A DNA stretch of 63,066 nt, filler included, from Salisapilia sapeloensis CBS 127946 (Eukaryota > Protista > Oomycota): the NCBI GenBank assembly GCA_023334545.1. It is 6 parts of 6 records of this genome, joined end to end, with 100 filler letters (N's around TTAATTAATTAA, not from the genome) between each part and the next. Parts side by side here need not be neighbours in the genome. Positions count along the whole stretch, not along the records: positions 47,634 to 59,817 come from JAADVB010000416.1; 5 more parts are not named here. The stretch is one strand, 5' to 3'. The notes under the pieces were generated by a model that worked only from the letters and a program-made list of their open reading frames with translations, searched no databases and was not told the DNA's origin. How positions within the stretch are numbered: position 1 is the stretch's first letter; every line of letters begins with the position of its first letter. Positions 16,249-59,817 of the stretch are shown here, one piece after another. Both the position numbers and the translations under genes were made by a program.

Positions 16249-18822
16249 CCGAGCGTTTTTTTCTTAAAGTCTCTCTTCACTCTGTTGCGCCGCAACAAGT
16301 TGAGGGAGATGCACGGAGAGTCAAATTGAGAGCTGCGGTTAATCTTCACGGATACTGAAAGCTACTGCCGGACGTAGAGACGCCTCACGACTAGCGCGGA
16401 GGACCGAGCGAGGGCACAAACGTCGTTCCTGTGTTTTGGCCGCGCTTAGTGCGCATCGGTCGGATGGTACCGTCACATATTGATATATTTTGAGACAGGA
16501 GGGTTCGGAGGTGATAGTGGGTGCACTTTATCAGGACACAGAGAAAGACCACTGGACCTCGAGCCGACCGATAGATCCTTGGCCGCATCTTAAAGCGATG
16601 CACGGGCGTTCGGGTTGTAGTAAAAGACGGTTTATAGGCTTTTAGCGGAGCTGTGATTGCTCGGGTGGAATTGCCATTGGTGCAGATTTGCAGTGGTGAC
16701 TTTGAGATTCAGTACTAGATCATGTTGATGCTTCTCGATATCTTCTCGTTGATTTACATGATATACATCAGAGTAGCTTTTAAAGGGGCACGTTCATGAT
16801 GCATTACGTGTCTCGAAATTGAAGGCTGCTAATAGTATATCACGCATGTAGAAGCTGATGTATGAGATGCAACGCAGTCTTCGATGCATTCAACGCGAGA
16901 TCGACATTTAGCCGGTAGAAAACATCAGCGCAATAGATATGAAACGTGAGTCAGTCCATGTGTAGGCTGCGATTAGTACTGGTTTCCGGTAAGAACAAGT
17001 GCAATGCTTTCTAATAAACTTTTGTTTTATTTCTGCTTTTAGAAATCGAACATTAAGAAGCAAACAATGACCAAATGAATGCGTAGGCGAGTTTCATAGA
17101 TATATGCTCCAGCATGGCCTTGCATGTCTTGTTGAAACCTAGTAATGCTCACCGACAAGATGCACACTGTCGTCGATTGTAAAATAGGGTCCAACGACGT
17201 ACAATGCATCAAAGCTTAATGAAAAGCAATTATGACCAAGATATTGCCCTTTAGAGCATGGTGAAGAGCGTATGTGCAAGTTCACCATCTTTGGTATGCA
17301 CAATGTTCAATGTATGGTTTGCATCCATCCAACGTCCTGTGCTATATCTCTCTAAGAACATATCTGATCGCACAACTGTGGAAACGGCTAGTCCAAGATT
17401 CATCACTCTTTCACTTCACTAGTGCGTACGCACCAACATGCAAATATTAAAGATATATATTGATGCTATAAAACAGACCGAGCTTTCTACGCAAAAATGC
17501 TAACGAGGCATGTTTTGCTGTCTGAATACCCTTGTTTTTTAAGTTTAGTACCCGCTGAGTTAGTGCACAGCGTACTAGAAACTAATTTGGATGCCTAGCG
17601 CTTCAAAATCCCTATTCTTTCTCGAACGATCCAATTTGAGTATGCATAAAGCTACAACGTATCTGTGCGCTTATTACTTGCATCGTGGGCACCACAGCCT
17701 GCTTCTGCAGATATAATTTCATACCTATTGATCTCGTGTTGCGATACGAATTTGAGAGAGATAATTTGTAATAGTGCCTAGAGCTTCGTGCAAGTCCAAT
17801 TATGATGAAACGTCAACTTTTAGCCACGAGAAACCTTATCTCTCTCCAAACTACTGCATGATAAAAATGCATAGAGCCATCACCATCTTTTGAGACAATA
17901 GAGATCTTAAAAGCGTAGATTTCGCTCGCGATCTATTTAGATGGTAGATTCAACAAACAATCGTCTGTATGGCTGCTTATCGCCCGTTTCTCGTAGAAAT
18001 GTAGATTTCGTACGATTCCCTCCTACTCTAGACTTTTGCTTCCATCTAAGAGAAGGTAGATAACGATTCAAACCTAATCGAATAAGGCGATTTTTATCGT
18101 TTGTCCCGACCACACTCTCTGTTTATAGATTCAACATTATGAGCATTTTTTCATCACCAAGGCTCTTGATTTCAGCAATATCATTATGAGAGAGAGTAAT
18201 AATTGGTGAGTATCGAGTTCCAACATGAAAAAGCAAAGTAAAAACGATAGCTTGAAGATATTTTGCTGTTGCGAATCCGTTTCAACACAAGATTGACTGC
18301 AATGCTTCGAATCTAATTATGTAGTGTGCTGGATTTATTCACAGTGGTATTAGTGCTTAGCAAGTACCGAATAAGCATGCTGTGTATGCTCCAGTCTGAT
18401 TTCTCATCTAGATTTTGTAAAATGGTGGGCAAATACAAACCTATAACAGCGTGTATAATATCGAATACCAGCCTAAGATACACGATCTGTGCTAGATATA
18501 CTGTAATGGGCATTTGGAGATTCCGATCCTACTCTACCTTTGCGTTTAAAGATATTGAGAACTACAATTTCCGCATAAAGTGCTATCGCATGAGCTTAGA
18601 ATCATTTCCCGCATTTGCAAATAAAAATCGTAGCAGTCCAGTTTAAACGAATTCCTATATGCTTCTTCGTCTTGATCGTAGTAAAACCATCTCCTAAGCA
18701 AAGAGAGTATTTATATCACAAAGGAATAACGATGAAATCAATTGAAACTCGGAGCAAAATTATGTAGATAGAAGGAGCAGAGACGAACACTTTAAAAAGA
18801 TGAAAGAATTATGATGTCTTAT

Positions 18823-19389
18823 CTATCTACATCCTTCCGATGAAGCTTTTCGATTCATTAAAAATGGCTCGCCGTACGAAGGTACGAAATATAAAGTCTC
18901 AATGGGCGGATAACAGCGGGCTTCTGGATGATTCCAATGACGGACGCAGTAACCTGACTTTTGAGCCCATTTCATGCAATCCTTAATTGCACAACGATGC
19001 CCACCACCATGCTCACGACACTTGCCATTCAAAATGGCTCCCTTTGGACAGTTTGGATGTTGGCATCGAGTACCACCACCGTGTGATTTACACTTACCTC
19101 GAGATTGAACACGGCGGTTGCAATCGGTCACACTGCAGAGTCGAGCGCGACGATGATGAAAGCATTTATGCTCTCCATGCTTGACTACTTCGACTTTGCG
19201 TCTGCAGTCTCGGACCCAACATTCCTCTTCTTGCGGTCCTGCGTAGGATTGAAAGCAGAGATCTTGTGCAGAAAGCACATGCAGACTGGAGTGCTTAGGA
19301 GGAAATAAAGTGGAGGGATTGAAAGAGGTCAAAGGTGCTCTAGTGTCTTCGTGATCTTCAATAGGATTGAGTAACAAAGCGATTTTCAT
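18823..19389 (-). CDS. Second Cys/His GGG-repeat zinc-finger protein
   Basis: CSVTDCNRRVQSRGKCKSHGGG, CQHPNCPKGAILNGKCREHGGG, CAIKDCMKWAQKSGYCVRH. Confidence 0.8.
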   Translation of the reverse strand: MKIALLLNPIEDHEDTRAPLTSFNPSTLFPPKHSSLHVLSAQDLCFQSYAGPQEEECWVRDCRRKVEVVKHGEHKCFHHRRARLCSVTDCNRRVQSRGKCKSHGGGTRCQHPNCPKGAILNGKCREHGGGHRCAIKDCMKWAQKSGYCVRHWNHPEARCYPPIETLYFVPSYGEPFLMNRKASSEGCR

Positions 19390-47633: not shown

Positions 47634-47832
47634 ATTCTTCGCGAAGCGTCAATTGGTGACGCTCTTCTCTGCGCCCAACTACTGCGGCGAGTTCGACAAT
47701 GCCGGCGCGATGATGTCGGTGGACGAGACGCTCATGTGTTCGTTCCAGATCCTAAAGCCCGCGGAGAAAAAGCAACGCTATGCGTACAATGGCCTAGGTG
47801 CCCAGCGTGGAGCGACGCCACCCCGAAAGTAA
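47634..47832 (+). CDS. PPP1C: Serine/threonine protein phosphatase 1 catalytic subunit, C-terminal fragment (not in ORF track)
   Basis: [46 protein letters not shown]...GATPPRK*, the signature PP1 C-terminus. 5' part lost in the gap. Confidence 0.95.
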
Positions 47833-47975
47833 AGTCGAGAGTAGGAATGTCGTAAGATGATGAAAGAGCTTTTTATAGAGACATCTATGAAGAGATACGA
47901 GTTCAAAAGTTAGGAAGAATAAGAGCATGCCATTTATTTCCTTTGTCGTGACGGAACGTGTTTGCAGTGCTTGGA

Positions 47976-48893
47976 CTAGGAAGTGGATTGGATAGAGTCC
48001 GCCGACTGGGCAAATGTCGCACACTTCACTGTGTTCACTAGGAGCATGGCGATGGTCATGGGGCCAATGCCGCCTGGCACGGGCGTGATGGCCGACGCCC
48101 TCTCGCTGGCAGACGCAAAATGAACATCTCCACACACTCGGTATCCCTTCTTCGAATCAGCATCGTCGACGTAGTTCATACCGACATCCACGACCACTGC
48201 ACCTGGCTGGAGCCAGTCACCTGGAATGAATTCTGGTGCTCCAGCGGCGACCACGACGATGTCGGCTCTAGCGACTTTTTCGTAGAGGTCTTTGGTAGAG
48301 GTATGACAAGTGGTCACAGTGGCGTTTCGTCGGAGCATGAGGAGGCTGAGAGGGAGACCAACGAGCTGGCTTCTTCCAATCACTACGACGTCCTTGCCTT
48401 CGATGTCGACGTTGTTTCGGTCCAAAAGCTCAAGGCAGCCTGCTGGGGTGCAAGGCTGGAGGTACAATTTGCTGGAGCTGGACTGTGCAGTTGCGACGGG
48501 TTTCTTGCCGAGCTGAGCAAAGTGCGTAGCGTGAAGGGCATCCACGTCCTTCCAGGTGACCACAGACTCCAAGAGCTCTTCCTCATGCTCATGAAGGTCC
48601 CCTGGAAGAGGCAGTTGGAGGAGGATTCCATGGACGGAAGAGTCGGTATTCAGCTTTACGATCAACGAATGAACGTCCTCAAAGGACGAGGAGGCAGGAA
48701 GCTCATGCACATCAGGCGTAATGCCAACTCGATTGCACGCATTTTTCTTCAGCCGAATGTACGTCTTCGACGCTTGGTCGTCTCCTACTAGCACTAGAGA
48801 TACTTTGGGCGGAGAAGGTAGTGCAGCAATGCTCTCCTTTAGCTCTGCCTCAATTTCCTTGCTGCATGCCTTGCCATCCAGTAGTCGAGCCAT
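47976..48893 (-). CDS. folD: Bifunctional methylene-THF dehydrogenase/methenyl-THF cyclohydrolase
   Basis: LVGDDQASKTYIRLKKNAC (YxxxK), GILLQLPLP, KDVD, PCTPAG, VVIGRS, VDVGMN, ITPVPGGIGPMTIAML. Confidence 0.95.
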   Translation of the reverse strand: MARLLDGKACSKEIEAELKESIAALPSPPKVSLVLVGDDQASKTYIRLKKNACNRVGITPDVHELPASSSFEDVHSLIVKLNTDSSVHGILLQLPLPGDLHEHEEELLESVVTWKDVDALHATHFAQLGKKPVATAQSSSSKLYLQPCTPAGCLELLDRNNVDIEGKDVVVIGRSQLVGLPLSLLMLRRNATVTTCHTSTKDLYEKVARADIVVVAAGAPEFIPGDWLQPGAVVVDVGMNYVDDADSKKGYRVCGDVHFASASERASAITPVPGGIGPMTIAMLLVNTVKCATFAQSADSIQSTS

Positions 48894-48991
48894 GACGCAA
48901 TTTGAATATGGAGGTTATGCCCTTTCGTTCCACAAAAGTTTTCCGACAACAGTAAAAACGATATATGTACCGCCAATTACTCCTCATAAGT

Positions 48992-51900
48992 CTACCACTT
49001 TCCAATGTACGTCCGCAGCAGTTTGTCGTCAATGCTAGGGCACTCGATGCCGGCGTGTTTTAGCAATCCATCGGCAATCGACGCATCGAACACCATGTCG
49101 TTCTGCAAATACACTTCAAACGCATCCAGTCCGGCTGCCAGTCGCTGTCCTTCGAGACTCTCGTCTGCCATGCTCAAGATCGTCTCTTTCCACTTTTGAT
49201 ACTCGACCTTCTCTAAGCTCTTGGCGTTCTCGACCTTTTCTTTTCCAGCTGCAATCAACTCGTCAAAGAATGCAGCACCGTCGATGGGTTCCACTGGGTT
49301 CTGCATGTGCAGCGTCTGGCCTAGAGACGCCGTGGGGACTTGCGCTGCAAAGTGCGTCACGGCTCTAGCTGCAAAGTCCACTGGCGTCATGTCAAATCGC
49401 CAATCCGGTCGATCGGGCACCATTCCAGCGCTCCAGCAGCCTCTTAAGAGTAGGTAGATAAAGTCGCTTTCGTTCCATGCTCCCGTGACGGACGACGGCG
49501 CCATGTTGCCTGGACGTAGAATCGATACAGGCAACCCTCTCTGCGCTGCCTCGCGACACATGGACTCTGCAACCCACTTACTCTGCGCATATCCATTGTC
49601 CAACTGTTCCCAGCTATTAGTCAAGTCCGCAGTCTCCTTGAGCACTTTGTTAGGGAAAGTGGACGGGAAGACTCCGTTCGTCGAGATGTAGTGCACAGGC
49701 TTCACGCGCGTCTTGGCCAGACCATTCGTGACAGCTAGACGCAGCACTTCTTGGGTGCCGAGGACGTTGGAGCTCTTCAAAGAGGCGTATGGCTTGACCA
49801 GGTTCACGTCAGCTCCGCAGTGGATGATAGCGTCCACCTCCATTGCCAGCATCTTGAACGTGTCGTTTCCCAAGCCGAGCAAAGGCTGGGCCAAGTCACC
49901 AGCTAACGGCACGATACGATCCTCCACGTCATGGTCCGCTAGCTCCTTATACAGTTTATACTTTTGAAGCGTCTGGCGAAGACGCTTGCCAACGTCTTCA
50001 CCATTCGCTCCTCGAGCCACGCAATACACCATCACGTGCGTTGACTTGATCAGTTCGTGCAGGACGTGGATACCGAGGAAGCCCGTGGCACCAGTCAGAA
50101 GTAACGTACGTGGCGGCTTACCCACCATCTCAACACGGTAGCGAGAGTACCCTGCTTTTCTCGTTGCGGCTGGGTAGATAGACATGTCTAGAGCTGCTTC
50201 TAGCGGAAGTACCAGTTGGGATCCATTTTCCTCCGCTTCCGGTTCGTGCGTTAGCTTACTGTCGATCTTGGCTGCAATCTTCTCCAGCTCCGGACCGGAC
50301 AAGACGTCTGCCAGCGTGAAGTTGACGCCGAACGTGTCTTTGATGCTCGAGACCAAGCGTGCTGACAAGAGACTGTGGCCGCCCGCCTCGAAGAAACTCT
50401 TGTGCCGATGTAGCCCTGCTTTACTCTTCAGGCGCAGCAGATCGACCCAGATGTCTAGCAGCTTGTGTTCCGTAGCAGTCTGCGGCTGAGATTCGGCATC
50501 CACCGTGGCATCCATGGACTCGTTACGCAGTTTGACGGCTTCTTCCACTGACGGAATCTGCTTTCTGTCGAGCTTTCCACTGGCGTTGTTGATCGGAAGA
50601 GCATCGAGCTGGACAAAGACGGACGGAATGGCGTAGTGCGGCAGTCTCGAGCTGAGAAAGTCACGAAGCTTGGCACTACTGGGCACACGCTCCCAGTCAC
50701 CTGGAACAATGTACGCGACGAGTCTCTTATCAGATCCTTCGTCTCCCTCCGTCAAGACCACTGCGGTTGACACGAGAGGGTGCTGCGCCAACGCACTTTC
50801 TACAGCGCCCAACACGACGCTGTACCCTCGGATCTTGACCATAAAGTCACATCGGCCGATGAGCTCTAGCGAGCCATTCGGCAGGAAACGAGCACGGTCG
50901 CCAGTCTTGTACACGAGTTCGCCTCGGACAATGTCGCGACGGAACCGTTCGGCTGTCTGCTCTGGACGATTCAAGTAGCCGATTGCGAGACAAGGGCCTC
51001 CAATGTAGAGTTCTCCCGGGACACCGATGGTCACTTGTTCTAACTTGTCGTCCAGAATGTACGCCTTGACATTCGGCATGACGTGACCACAGGATGCGTA
51101 CTTGCCAGTAAGTGCGACGTCCAAAGGGTTCATGTGCGCCAAGTCGACGGTGCACACGTCATGACATTCCGACACACTATAGAGGTTCTGGAGCTCACAG
51201 TCTGGTAGTAGGCGCATGAACCTCTGTCGCAACTCCATCGTCACGACTTCGCCACACAAAAAGACGATTCGAAGAGATGCAAGTTGCCTTTTCAAGTCCT
51301 CTTCTTCACACGTGTCAAGAACAAGCTGCAGTAAGGATGGAGTGAAGAGCACACGGGTGATATGGTGGTCCAGCATGTACTGCGCCACCTGCGCTGGATC
51401 GTAGATGGTGTTGTCTGGAATCACGTACGTCGTACGATTGCCTAGTATCGGACGCAAGAGTTCCCACACAAAGAAGACATGGCACGCTTCTCGTTCATTC
51501 TCTCCATATGGGAGGTTGGTCAGACGCCAGTGATACGAGTGGACTGCTCCTCTATGCGGACAGCAAATACCCTTCGGCACGCCAGTCGTACCGGAGGACA
51601 TGACAACGTATGCTAGATCATCCGGGTGTGTCTTAATACGGTCCGCAGGCATGACCGGGATCTTTTTTTTCTCCAGTCCGTCCATCCACCCTTCGTCCAT
51701 GCACAGCGTTTCTTGCCATGCTGGAAGACGAGAGCGATAGAGCTGCTTGGTGAGAATCGTAATCGGTTTGGATTCTTCCATGACTCTTTCGAGAAGATCT
51801 GGCGGATACACGATCTCGAGGGGCATGTAGGCTCCACCAGCCTTGAGAGCTGCGACGTATGCGATGACGAATTCGAGGCAGTGGTCCATGAAGATACCCG

Positions 51901-52924
51901 TGATCGTATTCGGACGAACACCAGCAGCGTAGAGGTAGTCTGCAAGTCGCTCGCTTTGGACATCCAGTTCCCCAAATGTAAGCGATTTGTCTTCGTAGAC
52001 CACAGCAGTCGCGTTCGGAGAGCGCTTTACGGCTTCATAGAAAAGGTCATGGAGACACTTGTCGCTAGGGTAGGATGCAGTAGCAGCGTTCCAGTCGTTA
52101 ATTTTAGTCTTGCTTTCAATCGCATTGCGTGCGAGGAGAGACTCGAGTTTGGATGACATGGACGATAGAAATGCTGTTTCGCTCTCTTGCGTCAGGTAGA
52201 AGTGCCCACCTTGGAATATCTCCATCTCAAAACCTACACTGCAGTCGGTCGAGTGCAAGTGCTTCCAATTTTCCAGGCCTTGTTGAGGAACAGAGGCGTC
52301 GGTATCTCCACCATAGACAGACAGGCCGATCGTATCCAAGCAGATAGTGTCTTTCTTGGTTTGCAGTGACTTGGAGACTGCATTATGAAGCTTGAGATCG
52401 TTGCGGAGCTTTTTTAGTACTTCCTGACGCTTGGAGGCAACCTCCAAGATGCCGGCGGGCGTCCCATTCCAGTCACGCAGTAGCTTGACGAGCTTTTCCT
52501 CACTCTGCAGCGTTGCAGAGTCGAATATGTCGCTTCCACCCATTGGATTTGATCCAGATAGGAAGAGGTGCATTGGAAGAGCCAAGCCTTTGGACTGGAG
52601 ATGGTCCAGCAGAGCGACGGCAGTCAACGCACCCAGTGAATGGCCAAACACAACGTACGGTTTATCAAAGAACCCAGTGCTCATACAGCCCATAGCCTTT
52701 TGCAACCACAAGTCTAAGTCGACTGAGTCCGTTTCATTCGTGTCGGACGCCCACTCCCAATCCAAACTCCACGTTTCGATGGGCACGTGGGCCGACGTAA
52801 GATGCTGGTGCCAATCTTCGGCGAAAGATGCTGCAAAGCTGCCGGCAGGAGGGAGGACAAGAAGCCTCAACGGTGCTTCTTCAACTTCTTCCACTCGGTG
52901 GAACTTCATGCGCGTCTGAACCAT
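48992..52924 (-). CDS. NRPS-like enzyme, domain order TE-A-T-R (thioesterase, adenylation, carrier protein, thioester reductase); ATRR/carboxylate-reductase-like
   Basis: TE: VFGHSLG, GGDTD, FQGGHFYL. A: YVVMSSGTTGVPKG, GELYIGGPCLAIGYLNRP, YKTGDRAR, GRCDFMVKIRGY, NASGKLDRK. T: FFEAGGHSLLS. R: LLTGATGFLG, IIHCGADVN, GYAQSKWVAE, RPGNM. Intronless, 1310 aa. Domain calls are well supported; substrate is not known. Confidence 0.92.
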   Translation of the reverse strand: MVQTRMKFHRVEEVEEAPLRLLVLPPAGSFAASFAEDWHQHLTSAHVPIETWSLDWEWASDTNETDSVDLDLWLQKAMGCMSTGFFDKPYVVFGHSLGALTAVALLDHLQSKGLALPMHLFLSGSNPMGGSDIFDSATLQSEEKLVKLLRDWNGTPAGILEVASKRQEVLKKLRNDLKLHNAVSKSLQTKKDTICLDTIGLSVYGGDTDASVPQQGLENWKHLHSTDCSVGFEMEIFQGGHFYLTQESETAFLSSMSSKLESLLARNAIESKTKINDWNAATASYPSDKCLHDLFYEAVKRSPNATAVVYEDKSLTFGELDVQSERLADYLYAAGVRPNTITGIFMDHCLEFVIAYVAALKAGGAYMPLEIVYPPDLLERVMEESKPITILTKQLYRSRLPAWQETLCMDEGWMDGLEKKKIPVMPADRIKTHPDDLAYVVMSSGTTGVPKGICCPHRGAVHSYHWRLTNLPYGENEREACHVFFVWELLRPILGNRTTYVIPDNTIYDPAQVAQYMLDHHITRVLFTPSLLQLVLDTCEEEDLKRQLASLRIVFLCGEVVTMELRQRFMRLLPDCELQNLYSVSECHDVCTVDLAHMNPLDVALTGKYASCGHVMPNVKAYILDDKLEQVTIGVPGELYIGGPCLAIGYLNRPEQTAERFRRDIVRGELVYKTGDRARFLPNGSLELIGRCDFMVKIRGYSVVLGAVESALAQHPLVSTAVVLTEGDEGSDKRLVAYIVPGDWERVPSSAKLRDFLSSRLPHYAIPSVFVQLDALPINNASGKLDRKQIPSVEEAVKLRNESMDATVDAESQPQTATEHKLLDIWVDLLRLKSKAGLHRHKSFFEAGGHSLLSARLVSSIKDTFGVNFTLADVLSGPELEKIAAKIDSKLTHEPEAEENGSQLVLPLEAALDMSIYPAATRKAGYSRYRVEMVGKPPRTLLLTGATGFLGIHVLHELIKSTHVMVYCVARGANGEDVGKRLRQTLQKYKLYKELADHDVEDRIVPLAGDLAQPLLGLGNDTFKMLAMEVDAIIHCGADVNLVKPYASLKSSNVLGTQEVLRLAVTNGLAKTRVKPVHYISTNGVFPSTFPNKVLKETADLTNSWEQLDNGYAQSKWVAESMCREAAQRGLPVSILRPGNMAPSSVTGAWNESDFIYLLLRGCWSAGMVPDRPDWRFDMTPVDFAARAVTHFAAQVPTASLGQTLHMQNPVEPIDGAAFFDELIAAGKEKVENAKSLEKVEYQKWKETILSMADESLEGQRLAAGLDAFEVYLQNDMVFDASIADGLLKHAGIECPSIDDKLLRTYIGKW

Positions 52925-53201
52925 GGTCTAGCGGATGGAGGGATCTGTCGCTCCCGCCGGTCGATTTCGTTATGATCTGATACGATGCAGATCAAGTTTC
53001 ACAAAATACCACACACTAGAAGATGGCTACATGTCGGAACGAATTGCATCGCTTGGAATAGACATTCTTGGCGTCTATTCTTAGTTTCTTTCTAGGGTGA
53101 GAGCTCGAGTACGATAGACTGGGCGAGCATCGGCATGGTATGTTCATGTTCTCTATCTTTTTTAAGGATATACGTGTTGGAATTGCATTTAACTTCTTTT
53201 T

Positions 53202-54923
53202 ATGAAGGAAGCGAATAGTACGCCTATAGATGGAGGGAATGAGTCGCCTCGGCACTCGGAAGCATCATTTTACGCCAGCGAGATATACGAATCGGAGTTT
53301 GAAGAAGAGGGAGAGACGACTATCACTAGGAAGTCTAGTCTATCATCTCCCACTAAGGCGGATGACCAAGATGTAGTCTTGGGTTCCGACGACAAAGCAA
53401 TGGCTATAGAAGAGAGTGAAAGCATACAACGTTTGAATACACCACGGCGCTCACTTCCATTTCTATCCAAGCTACCTAGTGTCAGCGAGAAAGAATATTT
53501 TAACCTTGAATCCAAGGAAGACTCGATGCAGGACCGAGATAGTGATGCAGAAACAAATGCATCGAGCAATCCAACACGGAAAGAGTCGCAGCCAGATGAA
53601 GGTCTACCACATGAGATTAGTCCACAGACTAATCAATCGGAGTCGCAACTGTTGAGCCCATCAAGCATCAGCGAATTGCATGAAGAGGTGTCCGTATCTC
53701 GAGAAGAAGCATTGGACGATAAACATAGTGGGATACTAAAGAAAGACGCGAGCGTACATGTAGATGCTGCTGGAACTACTGAAGTAAAGGACGCTTCACT
53801 GGAGGGAGAAATTGTCGAGGCTGATGACAAAAATCTGACGGATAGCACCTCAGCAGCTGTTATCATTGGGGATGGTAACTTGGCGAAAGTTGAAGGCATA
53901 TCGATGTCAAAGTCAAACACGGCAAGTGAACAAACGAATGAACACGTCGAAAAGAGAATGCAATTCAAGATGGATGAAAATGTCGAGGAAGGTTCAAAAC
54001 CACCGATTTGTCGTCATCAGACACCGCGATTCGTCGAGACTAAAGAAGATAACGCTACTCGCTCATCCGTCGGAAAAGGAAATCACCACCAAAGTAAAGA
54101 CGCGATGGAAGACCACAGTTCTACTACTCTAGCACCTATCTTCCCAACGAAACACCCACCTACTAGAAATTTACCGCATAAAAGTTCTGCATCTCGATCT
54201 CCAAGTAAGGTTTCGTCGGGAAGCACTTACGATGAATATCAACTTCCTCCGCGAAAGCCAGAAGTATTTAAGCAAAAAGGTACGAAGAGTCCTACGAAGC
54301 CTATCAAAGCCCAGCCGCCTGCTCGAGGGCCCAGCAACATCCAGATGCATCTAGAGAAGGCAACTGAGGAACAGCGACGATGGCTATTCTTTAACATGTT
54401 TCGCCACGGACAAACCTTGGACAAGTACGAAGAGTTTGTACCGAAAGAGATTGCACTAGCGAATTCTACACTTTTACCAATGAAGAACCAGGGAGTACAT
54501 AAAGAAGCAGTTCCACCTGGAGAGAGGCAACGAATGACGAAAGCTTACAGTGGTGGGAGGGGGCGGAAACTTTTGAATGGTCATACTGTACAGCATGGCC
54601 AACAGTGGATCGAACCGAAGCCGCATGACTCTGCGCTGTCTACTTATGACTCGATCCTTGACAAGTATTGTAAAACCGTGACGAGTCCTACAATCCAGCG
54701 TCAAATTTATAAAGCACGAGAAACAGATTTGTCTCCGCAACAGGCGTATGTCCTACAGCAACGTGTCGAGCGTGAATGGAGACGAGGGAATGGAAATAGC
54801 TTTGGTGGCGTTAGCTCTTCTTACACGACAGCGATTGTCCCTTTGCCACCAACGAAATCAGCATCTCGACGACCAAGCAGACCACATACATCCAACAGGC
54901 GAGAAAATGTGAATAAAAAGTAG
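53202..54923 (+). CDS. Hypothetical protein, mostly disordered with a short folded-looking C-terminal region
   Basis: 573-aa ORF, acidic Ser/Glu-rich N-terminus; C-terminal segment ATEEQRRWLFFNMFRHGQTLDKYEEFVP. No family recognised. Confidence 0.7.
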   Translation: MKEANSTPIDGGNESPRHSEASFYASEIYESEFEEEGETTITRKSSLSSPTKADDQDVVLGSDDKAMAIEESESIQRLNTPRRSLPFLSKLPSVSEKEYFNLESKEDSMQDRDSDAETNASSNPTRKESQPDEGLPHEISPQTNQSESQLLSPSSISELHEEVSVSREEALDDKHSGILKKDASVHVDAAGTTEVKDASLEGEIVEADDKNLTDSTSAAVIIGDGNLAKVEGISMSKSNTASEQTNEHVEKRMQFKMDENVEEGSKPPICRHQTPRFVETKEDNATRSSVGKGNHHQSKDAMEDHSSTTLAPIFPTKHPPTRNLPHKSSASRSPSKVSSGSTYDEYQLPPRKPEVFKQKGTKSPTKPIKAQPPARGPSNIQMHLEKATEEQRRWLFFNMFRHGQTLDKYEEFVPKEIALANSTLLPMKNQGVHKEAVPPGERQRMTKAYSGGRGRKLLNGHTVQHGQQWIEPKPHDSALSTYDSILDKYCKTVTSPTIQRQIYKARETDLSPQQAYVLQQRVEREWRRGNGNSFGGVSSSYTTAIVPLPPTKSASRRPSRPHTSNRRENVNKK

Positions 54924-55774
54924 CTCGATGTTGCTTGAAAACGATATGAGTTGCTCTTGACTTGAAAACACGGAGAAACGCTAAATGTACCTTTCATTTC
55001 CGTATGCTTCATAGTATTGGAGTGGGAACTATACTTCTGCGTGTGTGCATGCATCTGCATTTTGCATGGGGTGCAGAATGCGAACCGTGCAAGTGTTTAT
55101 ACTCTTTAAAGGAATACATAGTACAGAATAGCATCTACGTTACGATTACCAACTTATGATTTTGCGTTCAAATACACCTCCGTTCTGCTGATGGAAACTT
55201 CTGCAGGGCGAGTCGAAACTAATGGCATACCACTATGATTTTAAAGACTAAATTCCCTTCCAATTTTGACGCTGCAATGAGATATAGGATAGATGATGAT
55301 GGAATGGTAATCTGGACTATTTTCCATCAGTTCGTTTCAAATTCAATGAACGTTTCATTTACACATTCCAGGCTCTTGATGAACTATACTGAGTATGAGC
55401 GATTTAGCAGAGGAGCTTCGACAAACGAAGCGCGAATTGAACAATGCTCGAAAGTTGATTCACATTCAAGATGCAGAGATAAAGGCATTAAAGGATTCAG
55501 TCCAAAAGCTACAAGCACCACCGAGGGTAATAGACTATTGTATATTCTTGATGATGCTTTAATACAAGAAGAGACTTTTTGTTAACCATCCAATACATTC
55601 ACTAGATGCGTCACGCTGACTGTAGAGAGAGCTCACAAAGTACTCGACGGAGTAGGTAATTCAGAAGATTTCTATTAGAAACCTTAATTTTGATCTCACT
55701 TTTCACCTCATCGTAGAAAACAAATCGGTCTACTACATGATGGACTGAATCGAAGAGAGATAGAAGCTTGTAGG

Positions 55775-57811
55775 TTGCAATTAGACCAAAATGATTCGCA
55801 AAGACGGTCATCTTTCGCGAACAAAACCCGGAATTCAGTCAACTTTAATCGAAGACAAAGTTTGGAGGATGCAAGTGGTAGTTACTTCGACGATACCAAT
55901 GTACAAAGCACAGAGCCACTTTCATCGCAAGTACAGCTAGTGAGATCCTCGCTCCGCAATAAGTCGTCCACTTTTGTTCAAAAGATGAGACGTCAGCGAC
56001 AGATAGCAGAGCAATACAAACAGTCGCGACTCGCTGAGTTGGAGGTTGAGTGCGAGCTAGAAGAAAATATACATCTTCGCATGAGGAGAAAGAGAGCAAA
56101 ACCTCTAAAGCACTTGCCGCCTGACAGAGTTGGAAGAGAATGTTTCAATGACGAAGAGATACTTTTGCGAACCGTTATCGAGAACTGCAACTCATCATCC
56201 TCTAACGCTTCAGTTGAAAAAGAAGCAATGCTTAATAGTTCTATTAGTAGAAACATACAGGACGGATATGAAGTGCACAGTAGACAGAAACCGCCAGAGC
56301 AAGAGGAGGAGCAGTTTCTCGATCCTGATAAGCACGTGCAGTTGCATCGCCGTTCAGATGCTGCACTCACGATACAACGTCACTGGAGGCAGCATCGTGA
56401 GCGGATAGACAGTTGTACAAGGATCAATGGGTTTAGTGAAGAAAATGTGTACACCTACGCTGATGATTCCGACGAAAGTGAAGAAAATAGTGATAAAAGT
56501 TATGATGAAGGTGAAAGCTCGTCCGACATTCATGCCATTATGAACGATGCGGAGGACATAGTAAATGACAAGTATGAGGAAAGTAATGTGCAAGAATGGG
56601 AAAATCAAGATACTGTTGATTGCATCGACGCGGATTCGGATGGAGAACGTGTCTTGGAGCGAAGCGAACAAGCTCAAGACATAGAAAATGTACATGATAA
56701 TGTTGCAGAGATTCAAGAGACTATTCCAGTTGACGTAACTGCTGCTATAACAGCTTCAGTGCTGAATAAAATCGAGTATGAAGAAGATACTGATGTTGGA
56801 GTACCCAACAATCTAAGTGGAAACTTAGGCCAGCACAAGGATGAAATATATGCGTCTACATCTGACCTGCCGATTAATAAAATAAAGAAGGAGGATTCCA
56901 TTGTAGCCATTGCATCTTCAGAGCAACACGAAAGTGAGCAACTAGAAGAGAATATTAAAGGATCGAAAGAAAATCTAGGTAGAAGTTTAGAGCATAACAA
57001 GGATGAAGTAGGTTCCGCGACGTCTGAATCAATTGCTGACAATACAAAGGAAGACGGTATAATTGATACCGTGCCAGCTTTAGTGCGAAACGAAAGCGAA
57101 AAAGCAGAAAAGAGTACTGTTGGAACACAAGAAAATTTAAACGGAAACTTGGCGCGCAAGAAGGATGACGTAGTTGCGTCTACATTTAAACCATTGATCG
57201 GTGGTACAAACGACGATGATGCAGTTGCTTCTTTAGTACCATCTCAACAGCGTGAAAGTGAGTATAAAGAAAGTATGGATGTTGGAGCAGATATGAATGT
57301 AGATGAAAAATTGGAGCAAAACGAGGTAGACAATGATATATCTGCGTCCGAACCACTAGCCAGCGATACAGGGAAAGGCGAGAGAGCTGGTCAGAGTAGC
57401 AATGCTGATCAAGAAAATGATATTGTTGTAGGAAAAATGGAAGGTGAAAGTATAAATGGTACTGGCCAGACTGATGTCGATGATATCAGAGCTGACCGTA
57501 CTCCTCGAAACAGTACTGGTCACACTTCTCCTAGCGACGCATCCCATGAAAATTACGATGATGCGGCAAATGACTACTCATCGTCTAGACCAGAAGTATC
57601 TATAGATGATGCCACAAGTAACACTACAGCAAAGGGCGATAAGCTAGAAGAAGATAATGAAGCCAATGAGCATGCACAGAAATTTTATGGTGTCGATGAC
57701 GCAGATCCAGAAACATCTTCAAAGTTGAACTCAGTTCTACATGAAGTCGATCGTGCAATCCATGCAGCCGCCGAGCGTATACAAAAGTTTTGGAAACGAT
57801 ATCGAAACTAG
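55775..57811 (+). CDS. Acidic IQ-motif protein with 54-aa internal repeats; upstream exons near 55200-55750 likely
   Basis: IQ motifs AALTIQRHWRQHRER and C-terminal AAAERIQKFWKRYRN. Long open frame; no ATG at the listed start, so additional 5' exons are probable. Confidence 0.7.
   Translation: MQLDQNDSQRRSSFANKTRNSVNFNRRQSLEDASGSYFDDTNVQSTEPLSSQVQLVRSSLRNKSSTFVQKMRRQRQIAEQYKQSRLAELEVECELEENIHLRMRRKRAKPLKHLPPDRVGRECFNDEEILLRTVIENCNSSSSNASVEKEAMLNSSISRNIQDGYEVHSRQKPPEQEEEQFLDPDKHVQLHRRSDAALTIQRHWRQHRERIDSCTRINGFSEENVYTYADDSDESEENSDKSYDEGESSSDIHAIMNDAEDIVNDKYEESNVQEWENQDTVDCIDADSDGERVLERSEQAQDIENVHDNVAEIQETIPVDVTAAITASVLNKIEYEEDTDVGVPNNLSGNLGQHKDEIYASTSDLPINKIKKEDSIVAIASSEQHESEQLEENIKGSKENLGRSLEHNKDEVGSATSESIADNTKEDGIIDTVPALVRNESEKAEKSTVGTQENLNGNLARKKDDVVASTFKPLIGGTNDDDAVASLVPSQQRESEYKESMDVGADMNVDEKLEQNEVDNDISASEPLASDTGKGERAGQSSNADQENDIVVGKMEGESINGTGQTDVDDIRADRTPRNSTGHTSPSDASHENYDDAANDYSSSRPEVSIDDATSNTTAKGDKLEEDNEANEHAQKFYGVDDADPETSSKLNSVLHEVDRAIHAAAERIQKFWKRYRN
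56810..57295 (+). repeat. Degenerate coding tandem repeat, 162 bp (54 aa) period, three copies plus a partial fourth
   Basis: Units start at 56810, 56972 and 57134: NLSGNLGQHKDEIYAST..., NLGRSLEHNKDEVGSAT..., NLNGNLARKKDDVVAST..., each with ESE at positions 41-43. Confidence 0.75.
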
Positions 57812-57905
57812 ATTGGGCATTTAGCAGTGTGTTTACTTCATAAGGAAACCTTATCAGAGGTATCACTACTGGTATGCACCATAGCTTTGTGTGCTAAAAG
57901 TCAGC

Positions 57906-58739
57906 TTACACGTCGTGCTGAGATGCAGGATCCCAGCCACTGATGTAGTTTGCGTCAAGGCCATCCAGGCGTTCCATTTGATCCGCGGTCAGCTTTAAGT
58001 CCATAGCTTCAAAGTTCTCCTTGATCCGCGCCGCTTTCTCAGACTTTGGCAGGGTCACAAAGCCCTTTGCCAGACTCCACGCGATCATGACTTGCGCCGG
58101 CGTTGCACCGGATTCTTTTGCAATGTCGCCAGCAACAGGGTCATCGAACTTTTGGCCACGAACAAGTGGAGAGTAAGCCTCCATGAGAATTCCTTCGTTC
58201 TTGCAGTATTCCACCAACTCCTTTCGTTGCAACCACGGATGAAGCTCCATTTGGTTTACTGCAGGCTTGACACGACAATGACTTAAAAGTTTCTTAATGT
58301 GGTTGATACCAAAGTTCGAGATGCCAATGTCTTTAACGATCCCTTCCTTTTGCATATCTTCCAATGCTCTCCAACGCTCTCCGCGGGTTTCACTGTCAAA
58401 TGGAGCGTGGAGGAGGTAGAGGTCGATGTAGCCGCACCCAATCCGGTCATTGCACTGCTTGATGGTCTTCACAGCATCATCGTAGGAGCAAGACCGTTCG
58501 ACTAGCTTACTCGTGATGAAGATTTCCTCTCTCGGGATGCCGGAATCACGCACAGCACTCCCTGTATCCTCCTCATTTCTATAAGCTTGGGCAGTATCCA
58601 CATGTCTGTAGCCGAGACGCAAGGCTTCTCGGACAGCATTATAGGTTGTCGGGCCAGGTGTGATCTGATAGACACCGAAACCAACGGTAGGAATAGCTTG
58701 TCCACTCGGCAAGAGCGTCGTAGGGCACTTCATGCTCAT
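57906..58739 (-). CDS. Aldo-keto reductase (AKR5 / 2,5-diketo-D-gluconate reductase-like)
   Basis: Catalytic tetrad in GYRHVDTAQAYRNE (D, Y), FITSKL (K), DLYLLHAP (H); also IGISNF, NQMELHP, AYSPL, LPKS. Confidence 0.93.
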   Translation of the reverse strand: MSMKCPTTLLPSGQAIPTVGFGVYQITPGPTTYNAVREALRLGYRHVDTAQAYRNEEDTGSAVRDSGIPREEIFITSKLVERSCSYDDAVKTIKQCNDRIGCGYIDLYLLHAPFDSETRGERWRALEDMQKEGIVKDIGISNFGINHIKKLLSHCRVKPAVNQMELHPWLQRKELVEYCKNEGILMEAYSPLVRGQKFDDPVAGDIAKESGATPAQVMIAWSLAKGFVTLPKSEKAARIKENFEAMDLKLTADQMERLDGLDANYISGWDPASQHDV

Positions 58740-59047
58740 CTGTGGTCAAGAATGTCGGTGAGTCTTCGGCCTCTCCTCTAAATCTTTGAGTATTATCAGA
58801 TCTGGTTATGATTCTACAGTGACGGCGCTATGAAAGCTGTGTGCTTAAATCATCAATTTGGTCGTGTAGTATCACCATTCATAGCTCGGATGATCAGGAC
58901 TTCTGCCTACGGAAGAGAAGCTAGGATAAAAGATCAATTTGAATGGGTGTTTAAAGCCATCTTATTCTTGTCCATAAAATATAGCTTTAATACTCATGAT
59001 ATTTTAAGACGACGACGATTTGCCTACTATCTCATACTCGCGAGACC

Positions 59048-59720
59048 ATGATTTCCTGCGTCGCTGTCGTCGCCGCTTCTGTACGTACTTTGGCTTACTT
59101 TAACGGAAGTGCATAAGCACAGTTTCTTCTGTCTTTACTTGTGCAAATAGCATCGTGAGAATACTCTCTTGAAGTACTAGAAGCGACTAATATAGCATTT
59201 ATTACTAGAATGCGCCGCTATACGTTCGATCTTTTGAGGATGAAGAAGACTTGGCCTTTCACCATATCGCTCACGTATCACTTGATCTGGTAGAAGACCG
59301 GCTGCGCTCTTTGGATGTATCCGGGCTTCGAAATGACATGTACCTTGGCTTCCTTGGACCCGTCGAAGACTACCGAGTGTACGGCCTGCTTTCTCAGTGT
59401 ATTGATGAGGGAGTATTTAGCGTGGACTCATCCTTAGATAGATACGGCTACATCACAAACACATCCGTCAAGTTTTTTGCGATTCTCCAAGACGGACCAG
59501 CAAGGGATATTGATCTTCGACCAGTAACTCTCCCTATTTATTACAGACGTATCCTCAGCTAAAATGTCGCGATCAGTTCTTTGTAGAGTTACACAAGATG
59601 TATGTGAACGTCATATCAAACCCTTTTGCGCTCATTGACGACCGCCCGATCTCTTCCAAGCGTTTTGACAGTACCATCTACTCGCTTGTTGTCAACCACA
59701 ATCATGTCGCGCCGTACTAA
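59048..59720 (+). CDS. TRAPPC2L: TRAPP complex subunit 2-like (sedlin family); four exons
   Basis: MISCVAVVAAS|NAPLYVRSF...FHHIAHVSLDLVEDR...MYLGFLGPVEDYRV|YGYITNTSVKFF...|LHKMYVNVISNPF...ISSKRFD; TAA at 59718-59720. Confidence 0.88.
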
Positions 59721-59817
59721 TCGAAATCAATCCCCCTGACCATATCGTATCCTCATCGCTCTTGTCGGCCTACATGTTCATGCCTTCTAAATCCAAATCT
59801 ACCTCGTCCTTTTTCAC

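Follow-up and report, generated by a model that had tools for sequence, protein, structure and literature searches.

The window analysed here is a stretch of 63,066 nucleotides (filler included) joined from six parts of the genome of the oomycete Salisapilia sapeloensis CBS 127946 (GCA_023334545.1). The part at positions 47634-59817 holds, on the minus strand, a gene for a large nonribosomal peptide synthetase (NRPS)-like protein, in which a thioesterase (TE) domain is followed by an adenylation (A) domain, a thiolation or carrier (T) domain, and an NAD(P)H-dependent thioester reductase (R) domain. The gene is real, intact, and single, and its A domain appears, from sequence comparison, to belong to a distinct clade bearing the published signature of zwitterion-activating domains (ATRR and BurA). 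With roughly even confidence, the protein is proposed to reduce a small zwitterionic onium acid, of which glycine betaine is the foremost candidate, as an NRPS-like carboxylate reductase of one module that carries a type II proofreading TE acting in cis. The gene and its domains are laid out as follows:

48992..52924, minus strand: TE-A-T-R gene, from the list of open reading frames (ORFs) and translation; the coordinates include the stop codon
52151..52867, minus strand: thioesterase domain, residues 20-258 (PF00975, 1.5e-16)
52637-52639, 52298-52300, and 52202-52204, minus strand: TE catalytic triad S96 (in the motif GHSLG), D209, and H241, respectively
50573..52039, minus strand: adenylation domain, residues 296-784 (PF00501 and PF13193; PDB matches to NRPS A domains)
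Residues 443-452 (A3), 690-703 (A8), and Lys784 (A10), minus strand: A-domain motifs, by motif position
51155..51478, minus strand: substrate-pocket stretch, residues 483-590 (MAFFT alignment against canonical NRPS A domains, and family code table)
50270..50464, minus strand: carrier (thiolation) domain, residues 821-885 (PF00550 PP-binding, 7.9e-11)
50372-50374, minus strand: phosphopantetheine serine S851, in the motif GGHSL
49004..50104, minus strand: NAD(P)H-dependent thioester reductase domain, residues 941-1307 (PF07993 and TIGR01746)

The ORF encodes 1310 amino acids from an ATG start, is intronless, and contains no internal stop codon, in agreement with the first-pass annotation of this DNA, which had described a single intronless ORF. 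The order TE, A, T, and R given there is likewise borne out by Pfam and by NCBIfam TIGR01746. Within the A domain, AMP-binding (PF00501) covers residues 296-651 (1e-64) and AMP-binding_C (PF13193) residues 708-784, and the core motifs are intact: A3 SSGTTGVPKG, A7 YKTGD, A8 GRCDFMVKIRGYSV, and A10 K784. In the R domain, Pfam places NAD_binding_4 (PF07993) at residues 943-1189 (5.6e-65); the Rossmann motif TGATGFLG at 944-951 and Y1112-x3-K1116 are intact, and the closest solved structure is the MxaA reductase 4u7w (2.4e-67). The NCBIfam thioester-reductase model TIGR01746 matches residues 941-1307 with 279 bits against a cut-off of 213, which makes the aldehyde release by an NAD(P)H thioester reductase that had been suggested for this protein a reasonable expectation. 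Pfam gives no match to the condensation domain (PF00668) anywhere in the 1310 residues, the absence of which had also been noticed before, and none to ketosynthase (KS), acyltransferase (AT), or ketoreductase (KR) domains; it is the thioester reductase that comes after the carrier. Beyond NAD_binding_4, the same search finds no adh_short or short-chain dehydrogenase/reductase (SDR) domain, known as R2 in related enzymes, and the protein stops at residue 1310.

An identical architecture has been reported before. PhalNRPS_3 from Plasmopara halstedii was published as TE-A-T-Red and called an "unusual monomodular NRPS"; Phytophthora infestans and P. sojae were noted to have homologues, and the function was left open (Sharma et al. 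2015, BMC Genomics, PMC4594904); the description came from antiSMASH output, without substrate, product, or role. The P. halstedii protein P0022, which by its species and architecture is taken to be PhalNRPS_3, covers 99% of the window protein with 59% identity and groups with it in one oomycete clade. By sequence, the window protein is therefore an NRPS-like A-T-R reductase of the same orthologous group as PhalNRPS_3; it differs from PhalNRPS_3 in being the earliest-branching oomycete member in the trees and in having F rather than W at position 299 of the specificity code. Since the domain order was published in 2015 and dozens of full-length orthologues are present in databases, the suggestion that this order might be undescribed fails. 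The first-pass annotation had also considered that the architecture could turn out to be common and characterised: it is common, but its biochemistry is uncharacterised, and no later functional study of a TE-A-T-Red oomycete protein was found in the searchable literature.

Orthologues were searched in a collection of 5.8 billion proteins, from which the best 120 matches were retained. Full-length orthologues are found in at least 25 oomycete protein clusters, as well as in other eukaryotes (Chromosphaera and Triparma); the best matches, all from oomycetes, have the same Pfam architecture at 99% coverage and 59-64% identity. With the A-T-R part as query against a representative set, the best 150 matches were giant multi-module NRPSs, whose summed scores outweigh those of single-module relatives. 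The oomycete hosts include Phytophthora, Nothophytophthora, Globisporangium, [Pythium] brassicae, Lagenidium, Peronospora, Bremia, Plasmopara, and Peronosclerospora. Their alignments lack gaps of the kind that introns would leave, and the TE-A-T-R gene is a single ORF in all four of the other oomycete loci compared (L001-L004, from NCBI genomes and Logan assemblies). A complete ORF of the same architecture is also present under a transcriptome-style record name (GEMP01001905.1, protein P0034). The single ORF, the orthologues without intron-like gaps, the recurrence in independent assemblies, and this transcriptome-style record together exclude a misassembly or a gene-model fusion, and with them the earlier reservation that the TE and the A-T-R parts might be separate genes. 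The oomycete origin of the gene is supported by the best matches, all of them from oomycetes, by shared synteny, and by the tree.

The family extends to several distant eukaryotes. Several relatives at 41-48% identity have an N-terminal TE homologous to that of the window, namely those from the ichthyosporean Chromosphaera perkinsii (P0028) and from Triparma (P0048) and the eukaryote-like sequences P0031, P0034, P0037, and P0038. Three of these proteins (P0032, P0038, and P0048) have two carriers and read TE-A-T-T-R. P0032 and the Chrysoparadoxa protein (P0033) retain a recognisable TE from which the catalytic serine has been lost, and the relatives from diatoms (~1100 aa) and Mesostigma are A-T-R only, without a TE; no split TE gene lies beside the TE-less A-T-R genes in the two diatom loci inspected. 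In the A-T-R tree, the eukaryotic sequences form one clade with a Shimodaira-Hasegawa-like approximate likelihood-ratio test (SH-aLRT) support of 99, TE-bearing and TE-less members are interspersed, and the window protein branches earliest among the oomycetes. The simplest reading of this distribution is that an early TE in the eukaryotic family was followed by several losses or inactivations. Four proteins, P0040, P0043, P0045, and P0057, served as outgroup only; these are cyanobacterial two-module NRPSs of ~2200 aa with an A-T-R end and a PilZ (c-di-GMP-binding) domain, an unusual combination.

For the substrate pocket, canonical NRPS A domains taken from the same match list were aligned by MAFFT to the A domain of the window protein. 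The specificity code reads:

Positions 235 to 299: 235=V483, 236=F484, 239=W487, 278=L526, 299=F555
Positions 301 to 517: 301=C557, 322=L581, 330=D589, 331=V590, 517=K784

The aspartate at position 235 is absent, the window having H-V-F-F where canonical A domains read F-D-x-S, and this argues against an ordinary alpha-amino acid substrate. The loop before this position (in the stretch C-H-V-F-F-V-W-E) is five residues shorter than in canonical NRPS A domains, and the A5 motif takes the unusual form N-L-Y-S-[VI]-S-E, instead of the canonical N-x-Y-G-P-T-E. According to the family code table, the pocket is conserved from oomycetes to the ichthyosporean, a green alga, and diatoms, and the code hardly varies within the eukaryotic clade: V-F-W-L-W-C-L-D-V-K, where the window protein has F in place of the W at position 299.

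A pocket of this kind has been described in a few enzymes. The fungal NRPS-like glycine betaine reductase ATRR lacks D235 and holds glycine betaine in an aromatic cage formed by F201, W204, and W270, with E304 as counter-charge (Hai, Huang & Tang 2019, bioRxiv 10.1101/559534). In the A domains of the Burkholderia gonyol synthase BurA, which activates dimethylsulfoniopropionate (DMSP), and of ATRR, a shorter hydrophobic loop replaces the D235 loop, and an acidic residue (D606 and E304, respectively) faces the onium group (Trottmann et al. 2020, PMC7496086). The pocket of PtNRPS1 is formed by F214, F215, V216, W217, F285, and E319 (Nat Commun 2026, PMC13194791). In the window protein, F484, W487, and F555 would form the aromatic cage and D589 would be the acidic residue, matching the F-x-x-W motif of ATRR by published residue numbers. 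The spacing from position 299 to position 330 is 34 residues in the window (F555-D589) and, from the published numbers, also in ATRR (W270-E304) and PtNRPS1 (F285-E319). Similarly, the window motif F484-F485-V486-W487 equals the FFVW of PtNRPS1 (F214-W217), and the 68-residue spacing from it to F555 or F285 is the same. The pocket positions of the four proteins would be equivalent judging from such numbers and descriptions, rather than from an alignment, and D589 at code position 330 would correspond to D606 of BurA.

Bacterial relatives were sought in one genome per bacterial species, and 104 were retrieved. Most of them are A-T-R proteins from Rubrobacteraceae, of ~1000-1130 aa and 38-42% identity, with no TE. 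They share with the window protein the core and the type of pocket (C-N-V-F-F-I-W-E, W-L-N-G-E, and S-E-T-H-E) and form a sister clade in the A-T-R tree, differing by N, V, and E at the pocket positions of C557, L581, and D589, and by having a second reductase and a glycine-betaine transporter encoded as separate neighbours. Clustering of neighbouring genes places a 537-aa transporter directly upstream on the same strand in 16 of 58 loci, and a 259-aa short-chain dehydrogenase directly downstream on the same strand in 25 of the 58; stop and start codons of the A-T-R and partner genes often overlap, and in loci L005 and L024 transporter, A-T-R, and SDR are all consecutive. The transporter, a BCCT protein, exceeds the threshold of the NCBIfam equivalog "glycine betaine uptake BCCT transporter", with 653.7 bits against 650. 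YdfG is among the matches of the dehydrogenase, which is an ordinary SDR; the R2 domain of ATRR has been described as a YdfG-like SDR that converts betaine aldehyde into choline (bioRxiv 10.1101/559534). By its gene content, the operon looks like a split ATRR behind a betaine importer. No description of such BCCT/A-T-R/SDR operons from Rubrobacteraceae was found in searchable papers, and according to Hai et al. only eukaryotes have atrr genes (bioRxiv 10.1101/559534).

The operon is recurrent in soil Rubrobacteraceae; its region lies at 248-5900 in L005, with L024 and about 56 other Rubrobacteraceae loci within the range L005-L083. Alternative arrangements in this family of bacteria include a gamma-glutamyltranspeptidase and an Nramp-family transporter upstream, an amidase, or a gene resembling that of 3-hydroxyisobutyrate dehydrogenase. 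Other members of the enzyme family adjoin an alcohol dehydrogenase, SDRs, or salt-stress transport genes.

Besides these TE-less reductases, bacteria encode proteins in which the TE-A-T portion is joined to a polyketide synthase (PKS) module. Two loci found among the same bacterial genomes are:

L058, 7200-17822: TE-A-T-PKS synthase of Desulfopila sp. IMCC35008, 2449 aa
L059, 5601-14327: TE-A-T-PKS synthase of an uncultured bacterium, 2366 aa

Both proteins read TE-A-T-KS-AT-KR-T, with the N-terminal TE as their sole TE, and this matches the published description of BurA (PMC9428774). The TE-A-T-PKS architecture occurs in at least 11 protein clusters, which a 2190-aa piece of the Desulfopila protein matched besides mostly multi-module NRPSs, and similar genes are found on rhizobial plasmids. 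The A-T part of the two proteins is 45-47% identical to that of the window (47% for Desulfopila) and their pocket is of the betaine type, with the code (V/I)-F-W-L-W-N-D-D-V-K; the TE shows 27% identity to the window TE and 36-37% to that of Chromosphaera. In an A-T tree, the bacterial TE-A-T-PKS proteins come out as the sister group of the eukaryotic clade, with an ultrafast bootstrap (UFBoot) of 97 and an SH-aLRT of 89. The Desulfopila gene is followed by genes for ProV (540 against 444 bits), ProW, and ProX (279 against 215 bits), the glycine betaine/proline importer of the ATP-binding cassette (ABC) type, and L059 has a divergent neighbour resembling gamma-butyrobetaine dioxygenase and TmpA.

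The products of these synthases can be considered by analogy with BurA, which converts DMSP to gonyol (PMC7496086). A TE-A-T-PKS using a glycine-betaine starter, one malonyl extension, and ketoreduction would give carnitine (3-hydroxy-4-trimethylaminobutyrate); no paper describing a thiotemplated carnitine route was found. On a rhizobial symbiosis-type plasmid of Mesorhizobium sp. 131-3-5 (L087, 11200-20355), genes for a class I S-adenosylmethionine (SAM) methyltransferase, a TE-A-T-PKS, and a phosphopantetheinyl transferase are consecutive. This TE-A-T-PKS is 34% identical to the window protein over TE-A-T and has different pocket motifs, and its pairing with a methyltransferase recalls how an onium acid is made and loaded by a methyltransferase together with BurA.

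The N-terminal TE of the window protein finds its best PDB matches in RifR (1.6e-14), human TE2, and RedJ. An AlphaFold (AF2) model built from 22 homologues, with a predicted local distance difference test (pLDDT) score of 92.5, gives RifR, BorB, RedJ, ClbQ, hTE2, and YbtT as top Foldseek matches. Judged by sequence and modelled fold, the TE is type II-like, nearest to the editing thioesterases. These stand-alone enzymes (RifR, RedJ, BorB, ClbQ, YbtT, and human TE2), which are the best matches to residues 1-270 and share the same triad, act in trans, whereas the window TE is fused to the N terminus of the synthetase it presumably services. Among oomycetes, the TE is only 36-44% identical compared with ~68-74% for A-T-R, and so evolves faster; its Ser-Asp-His triad is kept in every oomycete orthologue and is invariant or nearly so in the alignment. 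The absence of the domain from diatom and bacterial A-T-R relatives, and the loss of its serine in two lineages, indicate that it is accessory. The TE-A domain of BurA is also type II-like, and its S90A variant makes normal amounts of product; this non-essential domain was assigned a proofreading role (Little et al. 2022, PMC9428774).

Taken together, the window protein would most resemble a BurA-like loading cassette (TE, zwitterion-specific A domain, and carrier) continued by an ATRR-like R1. In the proposed mechanism, the A domain would adenylate an onium acid with ATP, with the cage of F484, W487, and F555 and the charge of D589 holding the cationic head group, and the acid would then be transferred to the phosphopantetheine arm at S851 as a thioester. 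The R domain would release the aldehyde with NAD(P)H which, in the case of glycine betaine, would be betaine aldehyde, and a separate reductase, or a second turnover of the R domain, would take this to choline. Meanwhile, the TE (S96/D209/H241) would hydrolyse mis-loaded or stalled acyl groups off the carrier in cis. That the substrate class is an onium carboxylate seems somewhat better than an even chance from the sequence evidence. Among such acids glycine betaine comes first, as betaine transport or trimethylammonium chemistry features in three independent bacterial contexts, and DMSP or another short betaine is possible.

The relation to the known systems can be read in the same terms. With ATRR, the window protein would share the A-T-R1 core, the lack of Asp235, the aromatic cage with an acidic residue, and the ATP- and NADPH-dependent reduction of an onium acid through a carrier thioester; ATRR has an R2 and no TE, whereas the window protein lacks the R2, begins with a TE, and has Asp for Glu. 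With module 1 of BurA, it would share a type II-like TE directly before a zwitterion-specific A domain and carrier, as well as the shortened D235 loop and an acidic residue like Asp D606; in the window the TE (20-258) is fused directly N-terminal to the A domain (from 296), as in the BurA loading cassette. BurA, however, passes the starter to a KS-AT-KR module with an acyl carrier protein (ACP) and an internal TE-B and releases a hydroxy acid, where the window protein has a thioester reductase instead. It is consequently not an ATRR sensu stricto, lacking R2, nor a BurA, lacking the PKS module; the best reading, by analogy, is that it would work most like the first half of ATRR with the first domain of BurA attached.

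Other acids have to be weighed against this assignment. PtNRPS1 from Phaeodactylum tricornutum is a stramenopile NRPS-like reductase whose FFVW motif and spacings (68 to F285, 34 from there to E319, by published numbers) match the window exactly, and it is reported to convert L-tryptophan, both in vitro and in vivo, into tryptophanol (PMC13194791). An aromatic amino-acid or aryl-acid reductase of this type, yielding a signal aldehyde or alcohol such as tryptophanal or tryptophanol, would also agree with the R2-less homologues named by the same authors in Pseudo-nitzschia multistriata and Nitzschia inconspicua, the same species as the 43%-identical matches P0067 and P0064. Nevertheless, the window lacks the Asp235 that would hold an alpha-amino group, every informative bacterial context indicates betaines rather than aromatic acids, and the likeness to PtNRPS1 is known from published residues and not from direct sequence comparison. 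Aromatic amino acids were moreover poor substrates in the hydroxamate assay of the PtNRPS1 A domain, and the authors allow for additional substrates (PMC13194791). PtNRPS1 itself is A-T-R1-R2 without a TE; it is not among the best 120 matches to the window protein and is probably more distant from it than the diatom A-T-R proteins are. An aromatic substrate is accordingly regarded as unlikely. The same missing Asp235 counts against a secondary-metabolite synthetase that would reduce an alpha-amino or 2-keto acid to aldehydes dimerising to pyrazines, piperazines, or quinone-like products, for which monomodular A-T-R precedents exist in fungi and in bacteria such as Xenorhabdus (PMC7586950, and cited in PMC4594904) and which would agree with the NRPS label given to the gene by antiSMASH-type tools. 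A pocket shared by oomycetes, an ichthyosporean, a green alga, and diatoms fits a universal primary metabolite better than a lineage-specific natural product, and tailoring genes are clustered at none of five oomycete loci, leaving this explanation very unlikely. Least credible of all is a Lys2-type alpha-aminoadipate reductase or a generic carboxylic or fatty acid reductase (CAR), despite partial NCBIfam matches and database names of orthologues in Plasmopara, P. megakarya, and P. cinnamomi such as "L-aminoadipate-semialdehyde dehydrogenase large subunit" and "linear gramicidin synthase subunit D". The pocket is unlike that of either family and is common to the betaine-linked bacterial genes, and oomycetes make lysine by the diaminopimelate route. 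The Lys2 model TIGR03443 reaches 389.8 bits against an equivalog cut-off of 1030.1, and the CAR model NF041592 190.5 against 1300, with the CAR structure 5msc matching at only 3.6e-40, far behind NRPS modules. With scores far under both cut-offs and an A domain in a distinct zwitterion-type clade, the initial view of a rearranged carboxylate reductase derived from CAR or Lys2 has to be abandoned. MxcG was rejected as well (451 bits against an NCBIfam cut-off of 2300).

A further alternative concerns the TE alone, which instead of editing could be on-pathway, either supplying the acid from an ester or thioester precursor or hydrolysing the acyl group off the carrier as another way of release. 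Precursor supply was the role proposed by Sharma et al. (2015, PMC4594904), the triad is strictly retained in all oomycetes, and in the Desulfopila-type TE-A-T-KS-AT-KR-T proteins the N-terminal TE may release the product. The TE-A of BurA is conserved in all BurA homologues, and its role has been called "not yet fully understood" (PMC9428774); on the other hand, its S90A substitution had no effect on product formation. Sequence and fold group the window TE with editing type II thioesterases, and the domain is missing or inactivated in many relatives with the same A pocket and absent from the bacterial A-T-R operons, meaning that the reductase chemistry does not need it. An on-pathway function is thus considered improbable.

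Several observations weigh against the proposal of an onium-acid reductase with a proofreading TE. The equivalence of the pocket to those of ATRR, PtNRPS1, and BurA rests on published residue numbers and verbal descriptions, and one of these enzymes, PtNRPS1, with its FFVW motif, is reported to reduce L-tryptophan (PMC13194791). The eukaryotic pocket also differs from the betaine-transporter-linked pocket of Rubrobacter (C557 instead of N, L581 instead of V, and D589 instead of E), and its counter-charge is an Asp, as in the DMSP-specific BurA, and not the Glu of the glycine-betaine-specific ATRR, so that a different onium acid is quite possible. The protein has neither an R2 domain nor a conserved reductase neighbour, and the aldehyde may be the end product, be reduced in trans, or be reduced twice by the R domain. 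As regards the TE, a release role for its lineage is possible, given that the only TE of the Desulfopila-type proteins is the N-terminal one. Finally, an approximately unbiased (AU) test leaves a tree that groups the eukaryotes with the bacterial A-T-R proteins unrejected (p = 0.42), and the eukaryotic TE is about as close to RifR (153 bits, phmmer) as to the bacterial N-terminal TEs (165 bits, BLASTP), the two values coming from different programs. For these last two reasons a single TE-A-T origin is not proven.

A single origin of the fused TE-A-T cassette is still favoured by the A-T tree. The N-terminal TE is no oddity of oomycetes, since A domains of this kind are repeatedly accompanied by it in both bacteria and eukaryotes, and the architecture gives the impression of an old cassette to which a reductase was joined, not of a shuffled CAR. 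A broader and more tentative idea, possible although less likely than not, is that TE-A-T is an ancient mobile cassette for loading and proofreading onium acids, common to BurA-like PKSs and to a patchy set of eukaryotes (oomycetes, an ichthyosporean, and a bolidophyte). The eukaryotes would have joined it to a thioester reductase, giving an uncharacterised osmolyte route to aldehydes or alcohols from glycine betaine or, in view of the BurA-like Asp589, from a C3 onium acid like DMSP or beta-alanine betaine.

The genes found around the TE-A-T-R gene in the window are the following:

47976-48893, minus strand: FolD-like methylene-tetrahydrofolate dehydrogenase/cyclohydrolase (PF00763 and PF02882), 98 bp downstream of the TE-A-T-R stop
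53202-54923, plus strand: 573-aa ORF, serine- and acid-rich, divergent from the TE-A-T-R gene, with no Pfam match
55775-57811, plus strand: 678-aa open frame, very acidic and of low complexity, with no Pfam match
57906-58739, minus strand: aldo/keto reductase (PF00248, 2e-51), 5 kb upstream of the TE-A-T-R gene
59251-59562, plus strand: partial match to Sedlin_N (TRAPP subunit), ~6 kb from the TE-A-T-R gene

The FolD-like gene also adjoins the TE-A-T-R gene in L001 (a Logan assembly) and in [Pythium] brassicae (L004), and one database model (P0025) fuses the two. In Lagenidium, however, FolD lies 6 kb off on the other strand, and in P. cactorum a biotin carboxylase takes its place. The arrangement is probably synteny rather than an operon-like link, though a connection between one-carbon and choline metabolism is conceivable. 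The aldo/keto reductase could in principle reduce the aldehyde as an R2 acting in trans; this candidate was set aside since the gene is absent near the orthologues in L001-L004.

The 573-aa ORF has counterparts at the corresponding position in each of the four other oomycete loci, where its C-terminal 250-300 residues are conserved at 37-40% identity, and its predicted product is an uncharacterised disordered protein conserved in oomycetes. The 678-aa open frame, a questionable gene, has no counterpart in the four oomycete loci (L001-L004) and lies in a region where the G+C content falls from ~55% to ~41% and the AT skew reaches 0.25. The Sedlin_N match is probably a single exon of a gene with introns. 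In L085, another Sedlin_N gene (18454-19273) is located ~7 kb from the A-T-R homologue of the diatom Nitzschia inconspicua, which is most likely a coincidence.

Within the searchable literature, the assignment of the A domain to its family, the bacterial split-ATRR operons, the shared TE-A-T cassette, and the repeated loss of the TE appear to be new. The protein belongs to the very small number of thiotemplate enzymes that oomycetes have in common, be they Pythium-like species, Phytophthora, or obligate downy mildews, and its placement with zwitterion-activating A domains turns an "unusual NRPS" into a short list of cheap candidate substrates. If the betaine assignment is true, it would bear on choline and osmolyte metabolism in crop pathogens and marine diatoms, and plant-pathogenic oomycetes could use it to make choline, or a related head-group alcohol, from betaines of their own or of the host. 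Such a route would parallel that of plant-parasitic nematodes, in which ATRR enzymes have been tied to parasitism (PMC11050029).

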